A stretch of DNA of 64,000 nucleotides. Origin: Epithemia pelagica (taxonomy: Eukaryota > Protista > Bacillariophyta). A program made the translations under genes and the position numbers. The number at the start of each line of letters is the position of its first letter. Positions within the stretch are counted from its first letter, which is position 1. The DNA lies in contig OX337229.1 of NCBI GenBank assembly GCA_946965045.2, positions 2,604,001 through 2,668,000 of the forward strand, written 5' to 3'. This document shows, piece by piece, positions 15,976-29,561 of the stretch. The notes under the pieces are model-generated. The model was not told where the DNA came from. It made no database searches and was given only the letters and a program-made list of their open reading frames with translations.

Positions 15976-17655
15976 ATGACGTTAATTACTCCGCCGACCC
16001 ACAACAGTGCATCCTTCCGACCGGTCCATCCCATGGTTCTTCGATGCAAGCGACAGTTTCGACGGTTTTGGAAGGATGTACAATCACCAAGCAGTGCCCT
16101 CCACAACAACAACAACAACAACAACAAGAGAAAAAAGTCTTTTGTCTTGTCCAAGTATCTGGTGGGAATTTTGGCCGTGCTGGGATTCCTGTGGGTCTCG
16201 TCGAGTCTGGTGGGCACCCGTCGTGGTACTGTTGCGCATTCCAAAGCTCGCGGTGGCCCATCGTACCGCTCCTTGTCGCTGCCCAAGCGCTTGGAGGATA
16301 CGACGTTTCTGAATCAAACGGAATTGGATCGCATCAATCATGAATTGGAACGACTCAGTCTCGAACAAGTGCTCCACTGGATCTATTCCGTGGTGATTCA
16401 AACCGACGACGAGAAAACGACGGCCCATCATCCATTGGTCGATGTCACGAGTTTTGGTCCATCGGGCATGGTGATTTTGCACCTATTGGACCAGTTGGGA
16501 TACACGGACAGGGTTCCTGTTATTACCATTGATACCTTGCATTTGTTTCCAGAAACCTATGAATTCATTCGACTATTTCAAGCAACCGACAAGCCAGGAA
16601 AAGTGTCTTTATCCAGACAAGACACCAATGGAGACGACGACAATGGCTTTGTATTGCCTTTGCTGCACATTTATCAACCCAAGGAGTATACTACCAAGGC
16701 ATCCTTTGATGCCAAATTTGGTTCCGACTTGTACGAAACCAATCCAGATAAATATACCTATCATTCCAAGGTAGAACCCATGTTGCGAGCCTTGGAAGAC
16801 CATCACGCAAAAGTCTGGATTACGGGTCGTCGACGCAGTCAAGGGTACGAACGAAGTAAAGTGCCGATTCTAGAGTTGGATGGCGGTTCCCCCGTGGATT
16901 CGCAAAACGATGGAACCGCCAAACGTTGGAAACTCAATCCCTTGGCGTATTGGTCCTACAATGAGGTCTGGGACTACTTGCGAGAACATCAAGTCCCCGT
17001 GAATCCTTTGCACGAGATAGGATATAAAAGCATTGGCGATACCATGACCACACAACCAGTGGACCGTGCCGCCGAAGAACGCAGTGGACGATTCGTGGGG
17101 ATGGATCGAACCGAATGTGGAATTCATGCGTCGGCCGCCAAAATTGAAGAAATGCAAAAGGGAGCCGTGGCACGGGTCACTACCCCACAAGCCAAGGATG
17201 CAAAATCCAAAACAGACCAACAGGCAGTGACACGAGTACAACAGACAAAAAAGAAGCGAGAACGTTTGCCTTGCACCAACTGTCTGGAGTTGGACCCCAA
17301 GAGTTTCTTGGAGCTATTAGAAACCGGTACCAAGGATATTCTGATTGAGTTTTACAGTCCATATTGTGGGCACTGCGTGCATTATGCTCCTACCTATGAT
17401 GACATCTCTTTGGAACTACAGAAGCATTCTTCTCTCATTCAAGTGGCAAGGTATGATGTGTTCACGCACAAAGTTCCAAAGGAGGCGAAAGAGCAGGGTT
17501 TCGAGGTTCGCGGTACCCCGACTCTCTACTTGGTACGACGACCCCGCCAAAAGGACTCATCCAAATTTGTCGCCGAAAGGTTACAAGGAGGGCGCTCCAA
17601 ATCGGCTGTATTGGAATGGGTGAATAAAAACAGCCTTGCTTCTGGTTCAAGCTAA
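15976..17655 (+). CDS. PAPS/APS reductase (FeS-less, MET16/APR-B type) fused to C-terminal thioredoxin (CGHC), N-terminal membrane anchor; copy 1
   Basis: TSFGPSG, TIDTLHLFPETY, SKVEP, WITGRRRSQ, KLNPLAYW, GYKSIGD, ERSGRF, TECGIH. No CC pair before KVEP. Trx domain EFYSPYCGHC. TM YLVGILAVLGFLWVSSSLV. Confidence 0.92.
   Translation: MTLITPPTHNSASFRPVHPMVLRCKRQFRRFWKDVQSPSSALHNNNNNNNKRKKSFVLSKYLVGILAVLGFLWVSSSLVGTRRGTVAHSKARGGPSYRSLSLPKRLEDTTFLNQTELDRINHELERLSLEQVLHWIYSVVIQTDDEKTTAHHPLVDVTSFGPSGMVILHLLDQLGYTDRVPVITIDTLHLFPETYEFIRLFQATDKPGKVSLSRQDTNGDDDNGFVLPLLHIYQPKEYTTKASFDAKFGSDLYETNPDKYTYHSKVEPMLRALEDHHAKVWITGRRRSQGYERSKVPILELDGGSPVDSQNDGTAKRWKLNPLAYWSYNEVWDYLREHQVPVNPLHEIGYKSIGDTMTTQPVDRAAEERSGRFVGMDRTECGIHASAAKIEEMQKGAVARVTTPQAKDAKSKTDQQAVTRVQQTKKKRERLPCTNCLELDPKSFLELLETGTKDILIEFYSPYCGHCVHYAPTYDDISLELQKHSSLIQVARYDVFTHKVPKEAKEQGFEVRGTPTLYLVRRPRQKDSSKFVAERLQGGRSKSAVLEWVNKNSLASGSS
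16104..16126 (+). repeat. (CAA)n microsatellite encoding poly-Asn
   Basis: acaacaacaacaacaacaacaag, read as HNNNNNNNK. Confidence 0.9.
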
Positions 17656-18067
17656 TAGGAGTCACCCAAATATGTTAAAACTCGCTCACAATTGCAAGAA
17701 AGTTGAACAAGCGTTGAGGGTTGAGGCTTCCTCCCCGAAACTGGTTTGGCCGTGATAATTGGCTCATCCACGCATACTGCGGAGATGACAGAGTATTCTG
17801 ATACAACCCATATACAACCAACGATGGCCTGGTAATAAAAGGGACCATGGCTACGTGCTAAGGTTGTTCGTAGGTAACAAACCGTGCTGAGATGCCCTTA
17901 AACTTTCATTCCTCGTTGTTGAAAGGAGTCGACCTACGGATCCTCGTTGATTTCCCTCTCACAAGATTTCCATACCTAGAAACAGTGACTGTCCTTTTTG
18001 CGTGACTAAGCTTTTATGCATATCTGTGAATCCTGTCTCTACTAGTGAGCATGACTATGGAAACTGT

Positions 18068-18740
18068 TTACTCATAGATCCAGGGCTTTTGGCAGCTTTC
18101 CCATTCCACCACACCTTCGGGGAACCAATGGGCAATTTCTTTTTCGGCGGATTCGACAGCATCACTGCCATGACAAATATTGCGTCCAACTTCAATGCAG
18201 TAATCACCGCGAATGGTTCCTGGAGCGGATTCACTGGGCATGGTGGCACCCAACATTTTGCGTCCCTCCTTGACAACACCCTTTCCTTGCCAAACCATGG
18301 CACAGACGGGGCCAGATGTCATGTATTCAATGAGACCAGGAAAGAACTTCTTTGATTTCAAATCTTCGTAATGAGTTTCCATGTGTTCCTTGCTGGGGCT
18401 GGTCAATTTCATGGCAATGAGCTTGAAGCCCTTTTGTTCAAAACGCTTGATGATTTCACCAATCAATCCACGTTGGACGCCATCAGGCTTGATCATAATG
18501 TCTGATTGTGTTTCGAAAACATGATAGATAGAAAGGGCAAGGATACTGTAAGTAATGAAAACCAAGAACGAAAACTGGTCCTACCATCAAGGGTGTCTTT
18601 CTACAGATTTGCAGTGAATCGAGTTCCCGATGACACCGCCACTTCCCCCACCACATCCTTTTCCAACGCGAATGAAATGAGTCACTTCCACCGCTGAAAC
18701 TCCATACAAGACCATCATTTCACTTACATGTTCGCTCCAT
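18068..18740 (-). CDS. NDK: Nucleoside diphosphate kinase; exons 18740-18728, 18501-18068
   Basis: Spliced [29 protein letters not shown]...PGTIRGD...GRNICHGSD (catalytic HGSD). Confidence 0.97.
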
Positions 18741-19333
18741 GGTCGTTCTCTGTTGTTGTCTCTCTCCAATACAGACAGTTGCAGCAGCTATTCAGAAAGT
18801 AAAGATTTGCGGCAATGACCACGTACTTTTGTCGCGGATCTGGATGGGCATCGATGCCCCATCAACGGCCGAAGGACAGAGCACATCATTTGGTCTTGCC
18901 AAGACCAAGTCGGTCGCGATCGCCAGCCCACCCCGCTGGGTTCGGATTACGCGCACATTCTTTCATTATTGTGCCACGATAAGCAAACGCCATGGGCCAG
19001 TGTCACAAGTTACAAGTTGGGGCAAGTCGCACGCCATTGCCCTTCCCGCTTTTTTTGTTATCTCAAGAAGGTTTGTGTTGCCACCACAACATAGACCATA
19101 GACATAGCACTCATCGACAAGCTATAACCAAAACCAAAGAGCTCTTGCGCTGTCAAGCTCCGGTGCCCTCACCAAAGTCTGCTCATAACGGAAGTTCAGA
19201 TTCTCGGTTTGGTTCGTATCGCACAAAGTTAAGAGACGTTGGAATTCGCATTGGTGCAGTCTCTCCAATTTGGAAAGCAGAAGAAACAACTTCAAACCCT
19301 ATACTACGCTCGTTCCACCAAACACAGCTAAAC

Positions 19334-20980
19334 ATGGTGATATGGAAAGATGAAATGCGACGTGCACGGAAGTTGCACCGACCATCGTTGAAAGATTGGG
19401 AATGCGACGGCTTGTACGATGTGTTTCCAGATTACGTCCAAGATATTTTGCGCGGTGACGCTTCCACAACTGCTAGACCTCCTGCCTCTTTGGTGGGCGG
19501 TGGCAGTTTTAGTGATGCGGACAAGGGCGATGGCAAGACTCTTCTTGAGAATTACGAAGCGTTTATACCCGATCCGGCACATACCCCGGTAGTGGCAGAA
19601 CAAGTTCCAGCCGTGTTGGAAGGACACAAGGTGTCTCCGGAGGAGTTTTGGTCCGAATATGAGGCACGAAAAATACCCTGTGTCATACAACATATTCCCT
19701 TTGGTTACGAGGGAGGTCAAACGACGGCCAAACCATGGCCGGCCTTGTCGCAATGGCCTTTGACACAGCTTCGACACGATGAAGATTTGAGAGATCGATT
19801 TTTTAAATGTGGAGAAGACGACAATGGCAAATCAATCAAGGTCAAACTCAAACACTTTTTGCGTTACCAACGTCACAATCGCGACGATTCACCATTGTAC
19901 ATTTTTGATACCTCCTTTGATGAAGATGCCTTGGCCAAGCGCTTGTTACAAGATTATCGTGTTCCCATATATTTTCGCAATGACTTGTTTGACTTGGTAT
20001 CAGAGTCTCGTCGAGCACCCTATCGATGGTTCCTGGTGGGACCAGCTCGTTCTGGGACCACTGTTCACATTGATCCGTTAGCCACCAATGCTTGGAATAC
20101 ATTGATTCAAGGAAAGAAGCGATGGGTGTTGTTTCCACCCCATGTTCCCAAACAGGTAGTCAAAGGGAAGGGTTTGATCAGAGACGATGAAGATGATGAA
20201 GCCATTCATTATTTCATGTTTATCTTGCCCAGAATCAAACGCAAGGCAGCAGCCGCGGCTGCGGCCATGAAACAACAAGAACAAATGTATCCAGGAACAG
20301 ATTCTCTGCATGATCATGATCGTTATCATCGATACGACAAGAATGGACAACCGCAGCCTCAACGCTCGTCCAGAGTCTCTTCGTATTCTTCTAAAAAGTC
20401 TTCCAAGTCCAAGTCGAATGAAAATGATCATGCGTTGTATCGTCATTTTTGCTGTTACGAATTTACACAAAATGCTGGAGAAACTGTGTTTGTTCCTAAT
20501 GGCTGGTGGCATGCTGTGTTGAATTTGACTGACACGGTAGGCGTGACGCAAAATTTTTGCTCCGAACGCAACTTTGACGTTGTTTGGCGTCAAGCCCGAT
20601 CGGGAAGACCCAAAATGGCGTGGAAATGGTTGCAACAACTCGAGACTAGTCTCAAGCATGGACACTTGGCACAACGCGCACGAGAGCTCAATGCTACAGA
20701 TGGGTTTGCCATGAAATACGACCCTGTGGAAATTGTCAAGCGACGAGAACAAGAACGACTGGCCGCCAAGAAGTCGCTCGAAAAGAAGCCCAATCATGGC
20801 GAGGATTCCAATGACGATGATAGTACCGACAGCGATAGCAGCAGTTCCAGCAGCTCGAGCAGCAGTAGTAGCAGCTCGAGCAGCAGCAGTAGTAGTAGCA
20901 GTTCCAGCAGTGAAGAAGAGGAGGACGAAGAGGAAGATCAAAAAGAGGCCCGTCGACGAAAGCAACGCCGTAAGGGCTAA
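19334..20980 (+). CDS. JMJD6: JmjC-domain protein JMJD6/PSR-like
   Basis: FKCGEDDNG.SIKVKLK, DDSPLYIFD, RWFLVGPARSGTTVHIDP, GETVFVPNGWWHAVLN, TQNF, followed by a poly-Ser tract and basic NLS typical of JMJD6. Confidence 0.92.
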   Translation: MVIWKDEMRRARKLHRPSLKDWECDGLYDVFPDYVQDILRGDASTTARPPASLVGGGSFSDADKGDGKTLLENYEAFIPDPAHTPVVAEQVPAVLEGHKVSPEEFWSEYEARKIPCVIQHIPFGYEGGQTTAKPWPALSQWPLTQLRHDEDLRDRFFKCGEDDNGKSIKVKLKHFLRYQRHNRDDSPLYIFDTSFDEDALAKRLLQDYRVPIYFRNDLFDLVSESRRAPYRWFLVGPARSGTTVHIDPLATNAWNTLIQGKKRWVLFPPHVPKQVVKGKGLIRDDEDDEAIHYFMFILPRIKRKAAAAAAAMKQQEQMYPGTDSLHDHDRYHRYDKNGQPQPQRSSRVSSYSSKKSSKSKSNENDHALYRHFCCYEFTQNAGETVFVPNGWWHAVLNLTDTVGVTQNFCSERNFDVVWRQARSGRPKMAWKWLQQLETSLKHGHLAQRARELNATDGFAMKYDPVEIVKRREQERLAAKKSLEKKPNHGEDSNDDDSTDSDSSSSSSSSSSSSSSSSSSSSSSSSSEEEEDEEEDQKEARRRKQRRKG

Positions 20981-21560
20981 ACATTCACAACACGATGAAT
21001 CTCATGACGTCTCATTTGCGTTCATGAAAGGACTAGGCGTCTTTTGTGTGGCGAAAGTGTCAACCGCATTTGGAGTGACACATCAAAGATGCGGCTTTGT
21101 ATCCAGCTCGGAAGGACATAGTACGACAACACAGCGTTCCTCTTCAGTGATACCGAGGAAAGAGCACGATGAAGAAACATCACTCGGTTCTCGCGTGGCC
21201 ACGAGAGAAAAAACCTTGCAAAGGGAATTTGAAACAAGGAACGACAGTATAAACGACTAGGTAGGCGTGAACTCTACTGCTGTCTAAATATGCATATACT
21301 GCAAGCGAAAGCGTGGCGGACCAATTCTACCGTAAGTTGAAGCCTGCACACACAAAGCAGCGTAGTTCAGAGCATGCTGAATGTGGTCTTCTCATGGAGC
21401 ATCGAACATTCCTTCCGAAGCACCTTTAGTGTCGATTTCAGCAAACTTCGACTTACCAGTACCCAGCAGACATATTGCCACAAGTTGGACTGGAGTAAAC
21501 ACGCCGTGCGTCTTTGGTAGATGTGTTCCCATTTACCATATTGTACGTCGAGTGTAACAT

Positions 21561-23368
21561 CTAACCAGAACCTGTAGTTGAAGTGACCCATTCTAGGATG
21601 GATTTGGCCGATCTCGTGGTACCTTCGTACTCGACAACTTTGAATTGAGGCAAGCGTTTCACCACATACAAGGAAGGGGTTGATTCTACTACCAGGCCCA
21701 TACCCTGAGCTGTTTCCGGTACGTCATGATACGTAATATCAAAACGGGCCACTTGAATTGTCGAATGGGCCATTAATTCCAACGCAACCACTTCATACGT
21801 GGGAGCAAACTCTTGACAATGTCCACACATTGGACTGTGAAATTCAATTAACATATCGGTGGTACCTGTTTTTAAGACATCCACTAGACTTGATGGGTCC
21901 AACTCGAGACATCCCGAACACGGCAGAGCCACAGGTCCATTTTGCTGATTCCCGGTTGTGTCCGCACTGGAGCTTCCACTTTTGCCATCGGTTCCAAACC
22001 AGCTACCAAAAAACGCCCCTCCACTGTTGAGAGATGAGAATCTTGCTTGGGAGCTTTGCCTGCCTCGGCCAGCATCTTTTGGATCTTTGCTCGTGTCGAA
22101 TGAATGCCGCATTCTGTGCGAGCCATACCGACGAAGCGTCCGCTGCGTTCCCCAGCAGACCCTTCTACCGGTTGTGTGGTCATGGTATCACCAATACTCT
22201 TGTACCCGTTATCGTGAAGAGGGTTGTAAGGAACTTTGTGTTGACGAATGTACTCCCAGACTTCGTCGTAGGACCAATGCGCCAACGGATTCAGTTTGAA
22301 GCGTTGTTGATGATTGTGCGAGCTTCCAGTCGTTCCCTCACCCGATGCCGTGTCCGAAGAATCATCCACTTCGAGTATGGATAAGCTACTCCTTTCACCC
22401 CCTTGGCTTCGCCGTCGTCCTGTAATCCATATTTGAGCGTGATGGTCACGTAGGGATCGCAAAGTAGGTTCCACCTTGGACAAGAAGGCATACTTTTCAG
22501 GATTTGTTTTGTACAAATCGGCACCGTATTCTTTGTCAAATTCAGTCTTGGTAGAATGTCCTTTGGGCTGATACACTTTAAGCAAAGGCAGTGTAAACAT
22601 TCCATTGTCACTATGTTGCACCAGATTATCGGATGATCCTTTCGGACCAAAACCTCGAATGAAATCATAGGTTTCTGGGAACAAATGGAGCGTGTCAATG
22701 GTAATGATTGGAACGCTCCGAGTGTATCCCATTTGGTGGAGTTTATGCAGTAGTACCATTCCAGAAGGGCCAAAGCTCGTGACGTCCACCAAAGGATGTC
22801 GATTCGAAATGGAACCACTGTCGCCACCTGAATGATCGACTTCGACAGCTGTATAGGCCCATTGAAGAACCTGTTCCAAACTCATTTGTGAGAGTTGTTG
22901 GTTTATACTGCCCAGCTCAGTTGAATCCAATGTTTTTGGTAGTCGAGAAGGCAAAGAGGACGCAAAGCTACCATGTGATTTGTGTTTGTTGTTGTAGTAG
23001 ACACTGGCCTTGTTCATGTCGACTCGATTCCGAAGAAAGCCTGATGTCGATCCGATCCTGACAGACACGGCATTTTGATTACCCATCATTAATACGATGC
23101 CAAGGAAAGAAAAAGCTGCCATTACTCCGAAAATGATTTTCTGCCGCTGTCTACCATGTTTCTCGGATGATTTGGATGTACGAAAGTCCATCCAGAGTCG
23201 TCTCACAAATCGATTACATCGAAGACAAAAGGGACTCTGAGAAAGGTGGTAAAAAGAGTTCGACGACATGTAGTCGTTGTTGCTGCTCATCATGAGACTA
23301 TTGCTACTTCGACTTCGACGACGGGCGTTGCTCGTCCGACTCGGCGACGAGGGTAACAGCATCGTCAA
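21561..23368 (-). CDS. PAPS reductase-thioredoxin fusion, copy 2, with an apparent frameshift in the linker (~22030-22070)
   Basis: ORF 21884..23368 carries the TM and reductase motifs through TECGIH. The Trx domain (LPCSGCLELDP...EFHSPMCGHC) is in another frame (21561..22112). No plausible intron found at the shift. Confidence 0.85.
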
Positions 23369-26413: not shown

Positions 26414-29400
26414 TCATTTCTTATCCTTCTCATCGTCACCCGATGTGACGTAGTCCGGGTTGTCCTTGACAATAACGATACCCTCCAACACCGGACTGGT
26501 ACTACCACTCGCCGCCACCACTTCCTCGGTACCCAGTTCCGCACGATCTGTGGTAGCCAAGAGAACCGGCGAAGTATGCGTTTGGAACCCAGTAATGCGT
26601 CGAGGCTTTCCTGCCTGCCCAACTGTCTCCAATGCTTGACCAACGCGAACCGTGACGGGGCGCCATTCCATGACAACATCGTCCACTTCAGGCTCTACTG
26701 CATCCTCGCCATCAGCGCCTGGGACTGGTGCATCGTTGTACGAAACTGTAATAAGCATACGAGGATGCATGGCACAGGTGAGGTAATACAAAAGGTAATG
26801 ACTCTTGTCGAGCAAAGTTTTCTTCAAATCCAAACAGGAGTGCAACAAGACCAGCATACCGCCAAGAGCGGAACCTTTCAGCAGCATGCGATCGGAGTGG
26901 AAGGGACTCAAGGTCATTAGTCCCTTGCCCATGTGCAAGAATCCTTGGGCCAGTCTGACGCAGAATACATGTCCGGCATCCTTGGCATAGAATTCACTCA
27001 ATTGACGCAACAAACCAGCGACACGAGAATTATTGGTACCGGCACTGGCAATGCCCAAGCCTAGGATCGCATTCTGCGCGAGTTCGGCATCGGGATCGTG
27101 CGACAGACGAGATAGCTGGTCAATGACAGAGAACTCAGGGTTGGAAATGTGCAAGGTGGCGAGGGCCAATGGAACCGCACGCTTGATGGGCAATTCACAA
27201 TAATGCAGCAAATGATCAAATGAACGCAACGCCATTTCACTTCCCACATCTTCGCCCATGGTTATAAGGGCAATTCCCATAACGGCAGCCATTTGATGTT
27301 CGGCATCTTCTGTGAGGTGCTCTGCACATTCATGCAACATTTTTTGCACCAAAAGTACATTCCCACTTCCAGCATAGGCGCATGTTTCCAACATAGTGAC
27401 TGCGTACTTGGGTATCTTTTTGTGTTCGATTGTTTTGAGTGCTTCAATCATGGCATCGGCCTTTTCCATCTGTCCCAAAAACAAAAGTGCCAATCCTAAG
27501 CACAAATATCGCGTATGCGAGTGGTCCAGTTCTTCGTCTGTTGCTTCCATGAGTCGTTGTACAATCGTGCCACCAACAGTATCGTCACATTTGCCTACGA
27601 AAATCATGCCCAATGCCAAACCAGCTAGTGAAACTTCCAACATTTTGGTACTCGTAGTGCCGCCCGAACTCTCCACCATGGGCGCCAGGACTTCCAAGAC
27701 GTCCTCACGTGCCGTACCTGCATAGGCAATGCCCAAACCTGTGCACGCTGCACATTTGATAATATGTGGTGATTCACTTCCACTTTCAACATGCTCCGTC
27801 AACAAAGCGAGCGCCGGATCGGCATCGTTGCGGACACCGCAACTTAGGATGCCCACAGCCAAAGTGGCTCCGGCTTTGACGTAATCTTCTGAAGAGTAAA
27901 GGTATTTGTCAATCTGTGTCAAACCTTCTTCCACATTCCACAGTAGAATCGAGCCTAATGAGGCAGCGGCCGAAAGCATACCATGGTCTTTGTTTTTGTA
28001 GAGCCATTCATTGTCGTTGTTGCTGCTTGAACCATTGCCACTGCTTTCGGATGTCGACGAAGATGACGTCATGAGCTTGTCGTGTCCAAAGCCAGCATTG
28101 ACAAAGGCATTAACAAAAGTACTCGCCAAGTTGGCTCTAGCAGAATCAATTTGAACGTCTCGTCGAGATGCAGATGTTCGTGAAAATCCTCCTGTTTCGG
28201 CCAAATGACTTTTGTAGATATCTTCCGGAGTCTTTGGGTCTAGGACATCCAAATCCTGCGCCAACTTATGGAATTGCTCATGTAGTTTTTCGTTACCAAT
28301 CAATTCATTCATCAACTCAACCTCCGCTTCCAAGCCCTCCATGTCATCGGGAACTTCGAAATATACACCGTGACGGCCCAACAGCAAACACATTTGTCGG
28401 CGCATCAATTTGTCAGTGCATTCTTTCAGGAGGTTTGGTATCATCTCCTCTTCGCGACCACTTTCTAGGCGTAGTCCAACACGCAAGGCATCAAAGTATT
28501 GACCCTGCTTCCGATAAATTTCATACGCAGTTTCCAACATTTCCTACACATGACAACAAAATAAACCATTGCGTCAGGAACAAGGAACCAATGCCAGACA
28601 CGCGGTAGGCCGTCTCTATACTTACCACAAAGTCATCGGGATCACTCATATAGTCTGCCGTCTTGACCAAATACAGACAAATCCTGTGCGCATTGGTTTC
28701 ATCAATCAATTCGTCCTGCATTTGCAAAAGGTATTGCAATCGTTGAACTTCAATCAAAAGATCCACAGCTTCGGCTTCTGCATTATGGGATACATGAAAA
28801 GGAACAATGCGTTGCACAAGATCCAGCAAATCTTGAAAAGGCTCATCTCCACCATCAGGATCAATGCCTTGCTCTACGACACGTGCATTGTACTCTTGTC
28901 CAATTTCACCGGCCAACGAACGGACGAATTCATGTCCCCAGCTTCCCAAATTGTCGTCTACTTCCTTTTTGCCCTCCTCCTCTTCAGTTTGCATTTTATC
29001 TCCCTCTTTTTCTGTTTTCAACTGAGCATGATCTTTGACGGCTGATAATTTGAATTTGAGAGATTCTCGAGGTTGCATATTGGCCGACGGTGACGTGGAA
29101 AGAGTCATGGCCAAGACGGCCAAAACATCGGCCAACCGTGCACGAAGTTCCAGGACTTGCCCTTTGGCTCCAGTGACTTTGGTAGCCGCTTCTAGTTTCT
29201 CATATGTTACTTTGAGCAAGGGATAATGAGGTCGCAAAAATTTGAGAGGTTTGGGGACCGAAGTCATGGAGCTCGTAGCCGTTCGTAGTTCTTGCACCAT
29301 CATTTGCAAGGCTGTCAACCGCAATTCGGAGGTTACAGCAGAATCTTGAGCTACATTGGCTACCGTTTCGACACAAGTTTCCAATCGTTCTTTCAACTCT

Positions 29401-29561
29401 CTGTCTTCTTCGGACAAGGAATCCGGTTTCAATAAATCTTCGCTTGCCTTTTGCTTTTTCGTTTTCTTGGCATCATCATTCTTGTTGTTTTCCGTGCTTT
29501 CGTCTTTGCCAACCTCTTCGGTTTCCGTTCCTTCTTTCGTTTCGTCCGACTTAGGTGCCAT
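26414..29561 (-). CDS. RPN1: 26S proteasome regulatory subunit RPN1/PSMD2; exons 29561-28626, 28543-26414
   Basis: SMTSVPKPLKFLRPHY, WGHEFVRSLAGEI, HNAEAEAVDLLIEV, DSARANLASTFVNAFVNAGFG, GKPRRITGFQTH. Confidence 0.97.

Follow-up and report, generated by a model that had tools for sequence, protein, structure and literature searches.

A sulfonucleotide reductase–thioredoxin fusion with a predicted type II membrane anchor in Epithemia pelagica and related algae

In which cell compartment does a sulfonucleotide reductase work when a basic tail and a hydrophobic segment of membrane-spanning length precede its catalytic domains? The question is raised by a gene in a 64,000-nucleotide (nt) stretch of the diatom Epithemia pelagica (GenBank assembly GCA_946965045.2, contig OX337229.1, positions 2,604,001 to 2,668,000), hereafter called the window; all coordinates below are counted from its first letter. 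The gene, gene A, is one intact, uninterrupted open reading frame (ORF) of 559 amino acids (aa) on the plus strand (15976..17655, stop included), for which end-to-end alignment with homologues requires no intron. A tblastn search within the window found a second copy with the same architecture on the minus strand, paralogue B (23362-21561, from the first ATG at 23362), which shares 50% identity with gene A over the reductase domain and 42% over the thioredoxin domain. The original prediction had taken both for anchored reductases of 3'-phosphoadenosine 5'-phosphosulfate (PAPS) fused to a thioredoxin of the protein disulfide isomerase (PDI) type.

Pfam assigned the two domains of gene A to PF01507 (PAPS_reduct; 6e-39) and PF00085 (Thioredoxin; 1e-13). 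The PF01507 score is 134 bits for gene A, against a curated cut-off of 22.5, and 136 bits for paralogue B. The reductase domain of gene A (aa 114-385; 16315..17130), delimited by Pfam, fold and motifs, contains TSFGPSG (16447-16467), IDTLHLFPET (16528-16557), ERSGRF (aa 368-373; 17077-17094) and the catalytic ECGIH (aa 380-384; 17113-17127). The catalytic motifs of such enzymes have been defined as the ECG(L/I)H cysteine in a C-terminal lid and the substrate motif R(S/E/A)GR(W/F) (PMC8173546); both are intact in gene A as ECGIH and RSGRF, and all 82 aligned sequences have E380, C381, G382 and H384. Paralogue B also has ERSGRF, followed by ECGIH at 22114-22100. Among the six cysteines of gene A (C24, C381, C433, C436, C464 and C467), C381 is the sole one in the reductase domain and none form a CC pair, so that the CC...CxxC ligand pairs of iron–sulfur (FeS) reductases are absent.

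The AlphaFold2 (AF2) model of gene A, built from the 82-sequence alignment, has a mean predicted local distance difference test score (pLDDT) of 79.7, rising above 90 over both domains. It places a helix at aa 19-36 and an isolated helix at aa 55-78, leaves the stem that follows and the Lys/Gln-rich interdomain linker disordered, and folds the reductase (aa 114-385) and the thioredoxin domain (aa 431-554) with confidence. The reductase model has the adenine-nucleotide alpha-hydrolase fold of solved structures of PAPS reductases and of adenosine 5'-phosphosulfate (APS) reductases (APR). The best solved relatives by sequence are the fungal enzymes 7rge (1e-38) and 2oq2 (4e-37) and moss APR-B, 4bwv (6e-34); when the modeled reductase was compared by Foldseek, 2oq2 gave an E-value of 4e-22 and a template modeling (TM) score of 0.78-0.81, 7rge a TM-score of 0.87 and 4bwv one of 0.74. 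On alignment scores and modeled fold, the domain is about equally close to fungal PAPS reductases and to moss APR-B. The likeness to an FeS-less fungal MET16 claimed in the original prediction was borne out, 7rge and 2oq2 being the top matches in the PDB. The family P-loop, FGPSG-M/L, resembles FGLTGLV of yeast MET16, and moss APR-B has Asp at the aligned position. A choice between APS and PAPS as the preferred substrate cannot be read from the sequence; a preference for APS would follow solely from the extract activities of Thalassiosira pseudonana described below.

Behind the reductase, a flexible Lys/Gln-rich linker of low pLDDT (aa 386-430; 17131..17265) leads to the thioredoxin domain (aa 431-554; 17266..17637), which was recognized by Pfam, AF2 and PDB matches. 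The domain opens with LPCTNCLELDP (aa 431-441; 17266..17298), a conserved stretch in the alignment that holds an extra CxxC (C433 and C436), and continues with EFYSPYCGHC (CGHC, aa 464-467; 17365-17376) and the cis-Pro motif TPTLY (17515-17529). Paralogue B has LPCSGCLELDP (21926-21894) and CGHC (21827-21816) in the same arrangement, as had been predicted. Searched alone, the gene A domain matched TXNDC5 at 2e-25, PDIA4 at 5e-23 and the single a' domain of PDIA3 at 3e-14; single PDI a-type domains scored from 3e-14 to 5e-10, compared with 8e-8 or weaker for classical thioredoxins. These scores identify the domain as PDI a-type, with classical thioredoxins as its more distant relatives. It shares with the a domains of the endoplasmic reticulum (ER) enzymes PDIA3, PDIA4 and TXNDC5 the signature E-F-Y-x-P-x-C-G-H-C...AP and the cis-Pro loop; it differs from them in being a single a-type domain fused to a metabolic enzyme, with no b domains and no KDEL-type tail. 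E458, C464, C467 and P515 show little or no variation among the 82 aligned sequences. The active-site motif varies across the family (CGHC, CGAC, CGGC, CGSC and CSHC); the predicted PDI-type character of the domain is borne out by its PDB matches, but the use of CGHC itself as the signature does not hold family-wide. The C433/C436 pair, 31 aa ahead of the thioredoxin CxxC, is conserved in at least 90% of the aligned sequences; we suggest that it may relay electrons or form a disulfide of structural importance. The OST3/OST6 protein is an ER-luminal, thioredoxin-like subunit of oligosaccharyltransferase; for two Pyramimonas parkeae homologues (P0118 and P0159), the precomputed Pfam list adds OST3/OST6 (PF04756) to PAPS_reduct and Thioredoxin.

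The region ahead of the reductase domain is what sets the location question. Gene A begins with a basic tail that is predicted to be cytosolic (aa 1-54; 15976..16137), in which M20 is a second possible start. The tail contains the motif LRCKRQFRRFWKD (aa 22-34; 16039..16077), which lies under the first AF2 helix and recurs in paralogue B (LRCNRFVRRLWMD; 23224-23186) and in a homologue from another diatom (P0002), and KRKK stands immediately ahead of the hydrophobic segment. This single hydrophobic helix, the candidate signal-anchor, spans aa 55-80 (16138..16215) and comprises the AF2 helix of aa 55-78 and a hydrophobic run of aa 61-80. Its Kyte-Doolittle score is 2.13, and a crude Hessa sum gives +0.18, compared with about 10 or more in the soluble domains. 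The stem behind it (aa 81-113; 16216..16314) is modeled at low confidence and is basic and Ser/Thr-rich, with one NQT sequon (16312-16320). The corresponding hydrophobic segment of paralogue B is 19 aa long (23137-23081). The tail with its LRC.R..RR.W.D motif, the basic cluster and the one hydrophobic segment that the original prediction had described for both paralogues were thus all found.

A word search for homologues returned 200 proteins from diatoms, Symbiodiniaceae and other algae, nearly all of which combine PF01507 with PF00085. More than 100 homologues share this architecture, which puts the pattern far beyond chance. Homologues from Thalassiosira, Skeletonema, Cyclotella and Symbiodiniaceae fall into the same tree as genes A and B; this tree is unrooted and does not include MET16 and moss APR-B. 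The named orthologues of T. pseudonana and Phaeodactylum tricornutum were not among the matches of two word searches, and the published isoforms are linked to genes A and B via close relatives (T. profunda, T. antarctica, Cyclotella and Skeletonema). FeS-less isoforms, many with a C-terminal thioredoxin moiety, have been described in diatoms, haptophytes and dinoflagellates, and the chromist fusion enzymes form one clade with moss APR-B, whose sister group is the fungal PAPS reductases (Patron, Durnford & Kopriva 2008, PMC2275785). Two reductases of this kind occur in T. pseudonana, each of them FeS-less and equipped with a thioredoxin domain; one is predicted to be plastidial and the other "probably cytosolic", and extracts of the species reduce APS at very high rates (Bromke & Hesse 2013, PMC3901274). 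The APR-B-type fusion is the only sulfonucleotide reductase type in that species (PMC2275785, PMC3901274, PMC11350084), and the same architecture was restated in a 2024 review (PMC11350084). Judged by their sequences, genes A and B are diatom members of this known family of FeS-less reductase–thioredoxin fusions. The original prediction had known of no described system of this kind; the fusion is published as an APR-B-type APS reductase (PMC2275785, PMC3901274, PMC11350084), and what stands of that interpretation is the likely anchor with its predicted topology, the FeS-less reductase and the PDI-type domain, not the novelty of the fusion or CGHC as its hallmark.

The family can be placed among the characterized reductases by what it shares with each. 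With the published diatom fusions (PMC2275785, PMC3901274, PMC11350084), gene A has in common the FeS-less PAPS_reduct domain, ECG(I/L)H, the C-terminal CxxC thioredoxin and the algal groups in which they occur; in those papers the enzymes are described as soluble and plastid-targeted or cytosolic, with no mention of a tail, a membrane-length helix or a second CxxC. Within the family, the clade of genes A and B is distinguished by CGHC and by long low-complexity inserts. Fungal MET16 (2oq2, 7rge), the best match in both sequence and fold, shares the TQPV...ER(S/A)GR...ECGIH tail and the lack of an FeS cluster, but it is soluble and cytosolic, measures ~260 aa, works with free thioredoxin and has neither an anchor nor a fused redox domain. 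Moss APR-B (4bwv) is FeS-less yet APS-reducing, with a fold similar to that of gene A; it is plastid-targeted, lacks both thioredoxin domain and anchor, and carries its P-loop Asp at the position aligned to G-M of gene A. In the plant-type APR the redox motif is CPFC. That enzyme is likewise built of two domains, the second of which supplies the reductase with its own disulfide reductant (thioredoxin fold, glutaredoxin function), but is soluble and stromal and holds a [4Fe-4S] cluster through CC...CxxC, which gene A lacks (PMC6827007).

We then scored the best 19-residue window ahead of the reductase domain in homologues with enough N-terminal sequence, and 76 of these have one with a Kyte-Doolittle value of at least 1.8. 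The uncharged run has a median length of 22 aa, which is a membrane-spanning length, and the segment starts at a median of 41 residues from the N-terminus. The crude Hessa sum has a family median near +2, compared with about +10 for the best soluble-domain segment; paralogue B reaches -1.5. Over the 15 residues flanking the segment, the net charge averages +3.70 on the N-terminal side and +0.91 on the C-terminal side, with the N-terminal side higher in 58 of 67 proteins and the bias present in every major clade of the tree. The difference is clear in paralogue B (+5 compared with +1 or +2 by one or the other bounding of the segment). The tail and helix are contained in transcript-derived ORFs classed as complete (P0012, P0026, P0093 and P0159), and the anchor was found in all diatom clades examined. 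In the green alga Pyramimonas parkeae, whose plastid is primary, and in Paulinella micropora, family members carry it too (flanks +4/-4 in P. parkeae), so that the segment cannot simply be the signal peptide within a complex-plastid presequence. Across the family, no plastid signal of the ASAFAP type is conserved behind the hydrophobic stretch.

The tails bear clade-specific motifs. LRC.R..RR.W.D is found in A, B and P0002. Two further patterns occur in tails such as those of P0029, P0033, P0039, P0057, P0070, P0078 and P0099: Thalassiosirales tails start with M(M)ARRH and contain [DE]F[EA][EA]NI..MV, and those of Symbiodiniaceae start with MKRRMEH. An RR pair lies within residues 2-6 in 23 of 85 full-looking tails, compared with 6.7% of background windows; we take this, as a lead only, to resemble the di-arginine ER signal found at the N-terminus of type II proteins. 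In full-text literature we found no membrane anchor or ER/Golgi location for an algal APS or PAPS reductase, a provisional result since subscription papers lay outside the search, and the family-wide tail and membrane-spanning segment appear to be an undescribed, overlooked trait. A group of thioredoxin-less PAPS_reduct paralogues was also seen in Thalassiosirales (P0125-P0146, e.g. Mediolabrus P0146), with an N-terminal tail of ~100 aa, a membrane helix and an acidic end with a conserved NVTCDI.KARQGEC.

From the domains, motifs, fold, hydrophobic segment, charge bias and family conservation, we infer uncleaved membrane insertion, orientation and compartment as follows. Gene A and its relatives would be FeS-less reductase–thioredoxin fusions anchored in the type II manner, with the tail in the cytosol and the catalytic domains in the lumen of the ER, the chloroplast-ER or a later compartment, a reading to which we assign a probability of about 0.55. 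The predicted order of a cytosolic-looking N-terminus followed by a candidate signal-anchor was recovered, and the positive-inside rule applied across the family favors luminal catalytic domains.

Several observations weigh against luminal catalysis by an anchored enzyme, and some of them concern gene A itself, which is the weakest case for a signal-anchor. Its hydrophobic core is short, a stretch of 13 strongly hydrophobic residues ahead of SSSLVG, and the charges of the two flanks hardly differ (+5/+4 by either bounding of the segment); because of the short core and near-equal flanks, the segment is perhaps a cleaved signal peptide with a long n-region. Were it cut at SSS|L, the +1 residue would be Leu, which is tolerated there by ASAFind. 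Like transit peptides, both stems (A and B) are rich in basic and hydroxylated residues and poor in acidic ones, with 6-7 basic and 1-2 acidic among the first 30 aa. Across the family, NxS/T sequons are depleted in the would-be luminal stem, with 32 observed and 47.8 expected, and the charge statistic overstates its independence because the 67 homologues are mutually related. The literature predicts a plastid or cytosolic location (PMC2275785, PMC3901274), and an enzyme in the lumen would require import of APS or PAPS and export of sulfite to the plastid sulfite reductase. Four public runs were compared over 16130-22129, a region that begins after the first 51 codons of gene A, and all four behave there as DNA runs, since intergenic DNA is covered evenly and continuously.

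Many of these points are those on which the published view rests, namely that the hydrophobic stretch and the Ser/Thr-rich stem form a bipartite plastid presequence and that the mature enzyme is a soluble, stromal, assimilatory APS reductase. Signal-plus-transit extensions are known on the sulfate-assimilation enzymes of secondary algae (Patron 2008, PMC2275785), one T. pseudonana isoform is predicted to be plastidial (Bromke & Hesse, PMC3901274), and sulfite reductase is placed in the plastid; the ~13-residue core of gene A, its possible SSS|L site and the composition of both stems fit as well. In a diatom bipartite presequence, however, the signal peptide stands at the very N-terminus, and neither A nor B has it there: their hydrophobic cores begin only at aa 61 (A; aa 42 if counted from M20) and at aa 76 (B, counted from its first Met), and in the family at large the segment is likewise recessed, behind tails that bear conserved motifs. 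The uncharged runs are long enough to span a membrane, and B, P0002 and most clades lack an F/W/Y/L +1 or other conserved aromatic, ASAFAP-type motif after the segment. Many stems are short or acidic, those of Thalassiosirales being only 15-25 aa long with acidic residues, and the same anchor is found in Pyramimonas and Paulinella, where presequences of this kind are not in use. We consider a stromal enzyme unlikely on balance. The opposite orientation, in which the protein is anchored with its tail translocated or embedded and its catalytic domains face the cytosol on the ER, the chloroplast-ER or another organelle, would make the supply of substrate trivial, APS, PAPS and glutathione being freely available in the cytosol; it would agree with the "probably cytosolic" isoform of T. 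pseudonana (PMC3901274), with stems that are not enriched in sequons and with the nearly equal flanks of gene A. Against it stand the charge bias, most striking in Pyramimonas, the length (median about 40 aa) and strongly basic character of the tails, which disfavor translocation, and a PDI a-type thioredoxin domain typical of the ER lumen; we hold this arrangement to be quite unlikely.

Two further readings seem improbable to us. For the clade of A, B and P0002, the tail could be a mitochondrial presequence and the helix a stop-transfer segment, anchoring the enzyme in the inner membrane with its domains in the intermembrane space. Within their first 25 aa, the three tails lack acidic residues, like organellar presequences, and contain 3-5 basic ones, the AF2 helix of aa 19-36 is basic and amphipathic, sulfate assimilation is mitochondrial in Euglena (PMC2275785), and the intermembrane space, which cytosolic nucleotides and glutathione can enter, would suit a CGHC domain. 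In the family, however, 52 of 79 tails have at least two acidic residues in that stretch, for example in Symbiodiniaceae and Thalassiosirales, and the conserved motif, instead of opening the tail, comes 20-50 aa after the start. A function suggested in the original prediction, read here as that of a non-assimilatory PAPS reductase in the Golgi or ER lumen that tunes PAPS for sulfated polysaccharides and is separate from the assimilatory enzyme, is speculation, and we think it similarly improbable. A short basic tail, helix, stem and catalytic domain do make up the type II plan of Golgi transferases, and the P-loop is closer to that of yeast MET16 than to the Asp-bearing loop of moss APR-B. On the other hand, no second type of sulfonucleotide reductase is reported for diatoms and APS is reduced at very high rates by extracts of T. 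pseudonana (PMC2275785, PMC3901274), the anchor is found in all diatom clades examined, and nothing ties the gene to sulfotransferases or PAPS transporters.

In the tree, paralogue B is the slower-evolving of the two E. pelagica copies; it is 75% identical to an Epithemia protein and, more than gene A, close to that protein and to P0002 as an orthologue. Gene A sits on a longer branch within the same well-supported five-member clade. The reductase frame of paralogue B is parted from its thioredoxin frame by a 1-nt frameshift (22036..22043), which alignment with the Epithemia and P0002 proteins narrowed to 22043-22037 and which is polymorphic in read contigs. The contigs of two runs (X1 and X3) agree with the window here, and that of a third (X2) has one extra base after 22036 that puts the whole of paralogue B in one frame, so that at least one allele or strain has an intact copy. 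An intron behind the frame change was considered and rejected, as only ~6 nt lie between the frames and the 1-nt allele restores the frame. The X2 contig also has an in-frame GTG insertion after 16222 (plus strand), in the stem of gene A, together with several nearby single-nucleotide polymorphisms, which suggests allelic variation that keeps the reading frame. An apparent joint 16572>17032 was rejected as a deletion, since it arises from a paralogue B contig cross-matching the conserved IDTLHLFPET region of gene A.

Between the paralogues lie a nucleoside diphosphate kinase (NDK; 18068-18565, minus strand; 1e-54) and a JmjC/cupin hydroxylase with a long poly-Ser/Glu tail (18992-20980, plus strand), and beside them lies the proteasome subunit RPN1 (26414-28540, minus strand), which is apparently split over two ORFs and continued by 28521-29561. 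Another diatom assembly (ENA ERZ25042306) keeps both types of gene with the conserved neighbors RPN1 and NDK: the B-type gene P0002 (L001 7534-11977) adjoins RPN1, as paralogue B does, and the A-type gene P0006 (L002 9605-19820) lies near NDK, as gene A does. With both types beside the same neighbors in another diatom, the duplication is therefore old and both copies have been maintained. The P0006 ORF extends 132 codons upstream of its called start, and the extension includes the tail motif LLVQCQYFFRNYLWW.

As to what the protein does, we infer catalysis and substrate from the conserved motifs and the solved homologues. APS or PAPS would be held by RSGRF and the nucleotide-binding core, and Cys381 of ECGIH, on the mobile C-terminal lid, would attack the sulfate, leaving an enzyme S-sulfocysteine and releasing AMP or adenosine 3',5'-bisphosphate (PAP). 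The fused PDI-type domain (C464/C467) would resolve the S-sulfocysteine, freeing sulfite and forming a disulfide in that domain, which could then be re-reduced by glutathione or a partner protein, with the C433/C436 CxxC possibly acting as a relay.

The reductase–thioredoxin fusion was already known, and the apparent addition made here is the family-wide anchor with its predicted luminal topology. Since the anchored family is, according to the literature, the sole sulfonucleotide reductase type of T. pseudonana and all diatom clades examined carry the anchor, at least some anchored members must be assimilatory, which makes the question of location more interesting. A wider proposal, that diatoms, dinoflagellates and some other algae carry out sulfonucleotide reduction in the lumen of the ER or chloroplast-ER and not in the plastid stroma, we put forward tentatively, as a possibility that may well prove wrong. 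Should the anchor prove instead to be a targeting signal of an unusual kind that is cleaved off, the gene would encode an APS reductase of the ordinary, assimilatory kind. In metabolic models and reviews this step belongs to a soluble enzyme of the plastid or cytosol, and the literature gives the family as the only sulfonucleotide reductase type of diatoms and dinoflagellates. If catalysis is luminal, the first reductive step of sulfur assimilation would shift into the endomembrane system, and the PDI-like domain would gain a rationale; APS or PAPS could also be read as an oxidant that loads a disulfide onto it with each turnover. The routes of APS, PAPS and toxic sulfite through the cell would then need to be redrawn in diatoms and dinoflagellates, which are major players in the marine sulfur cycle.

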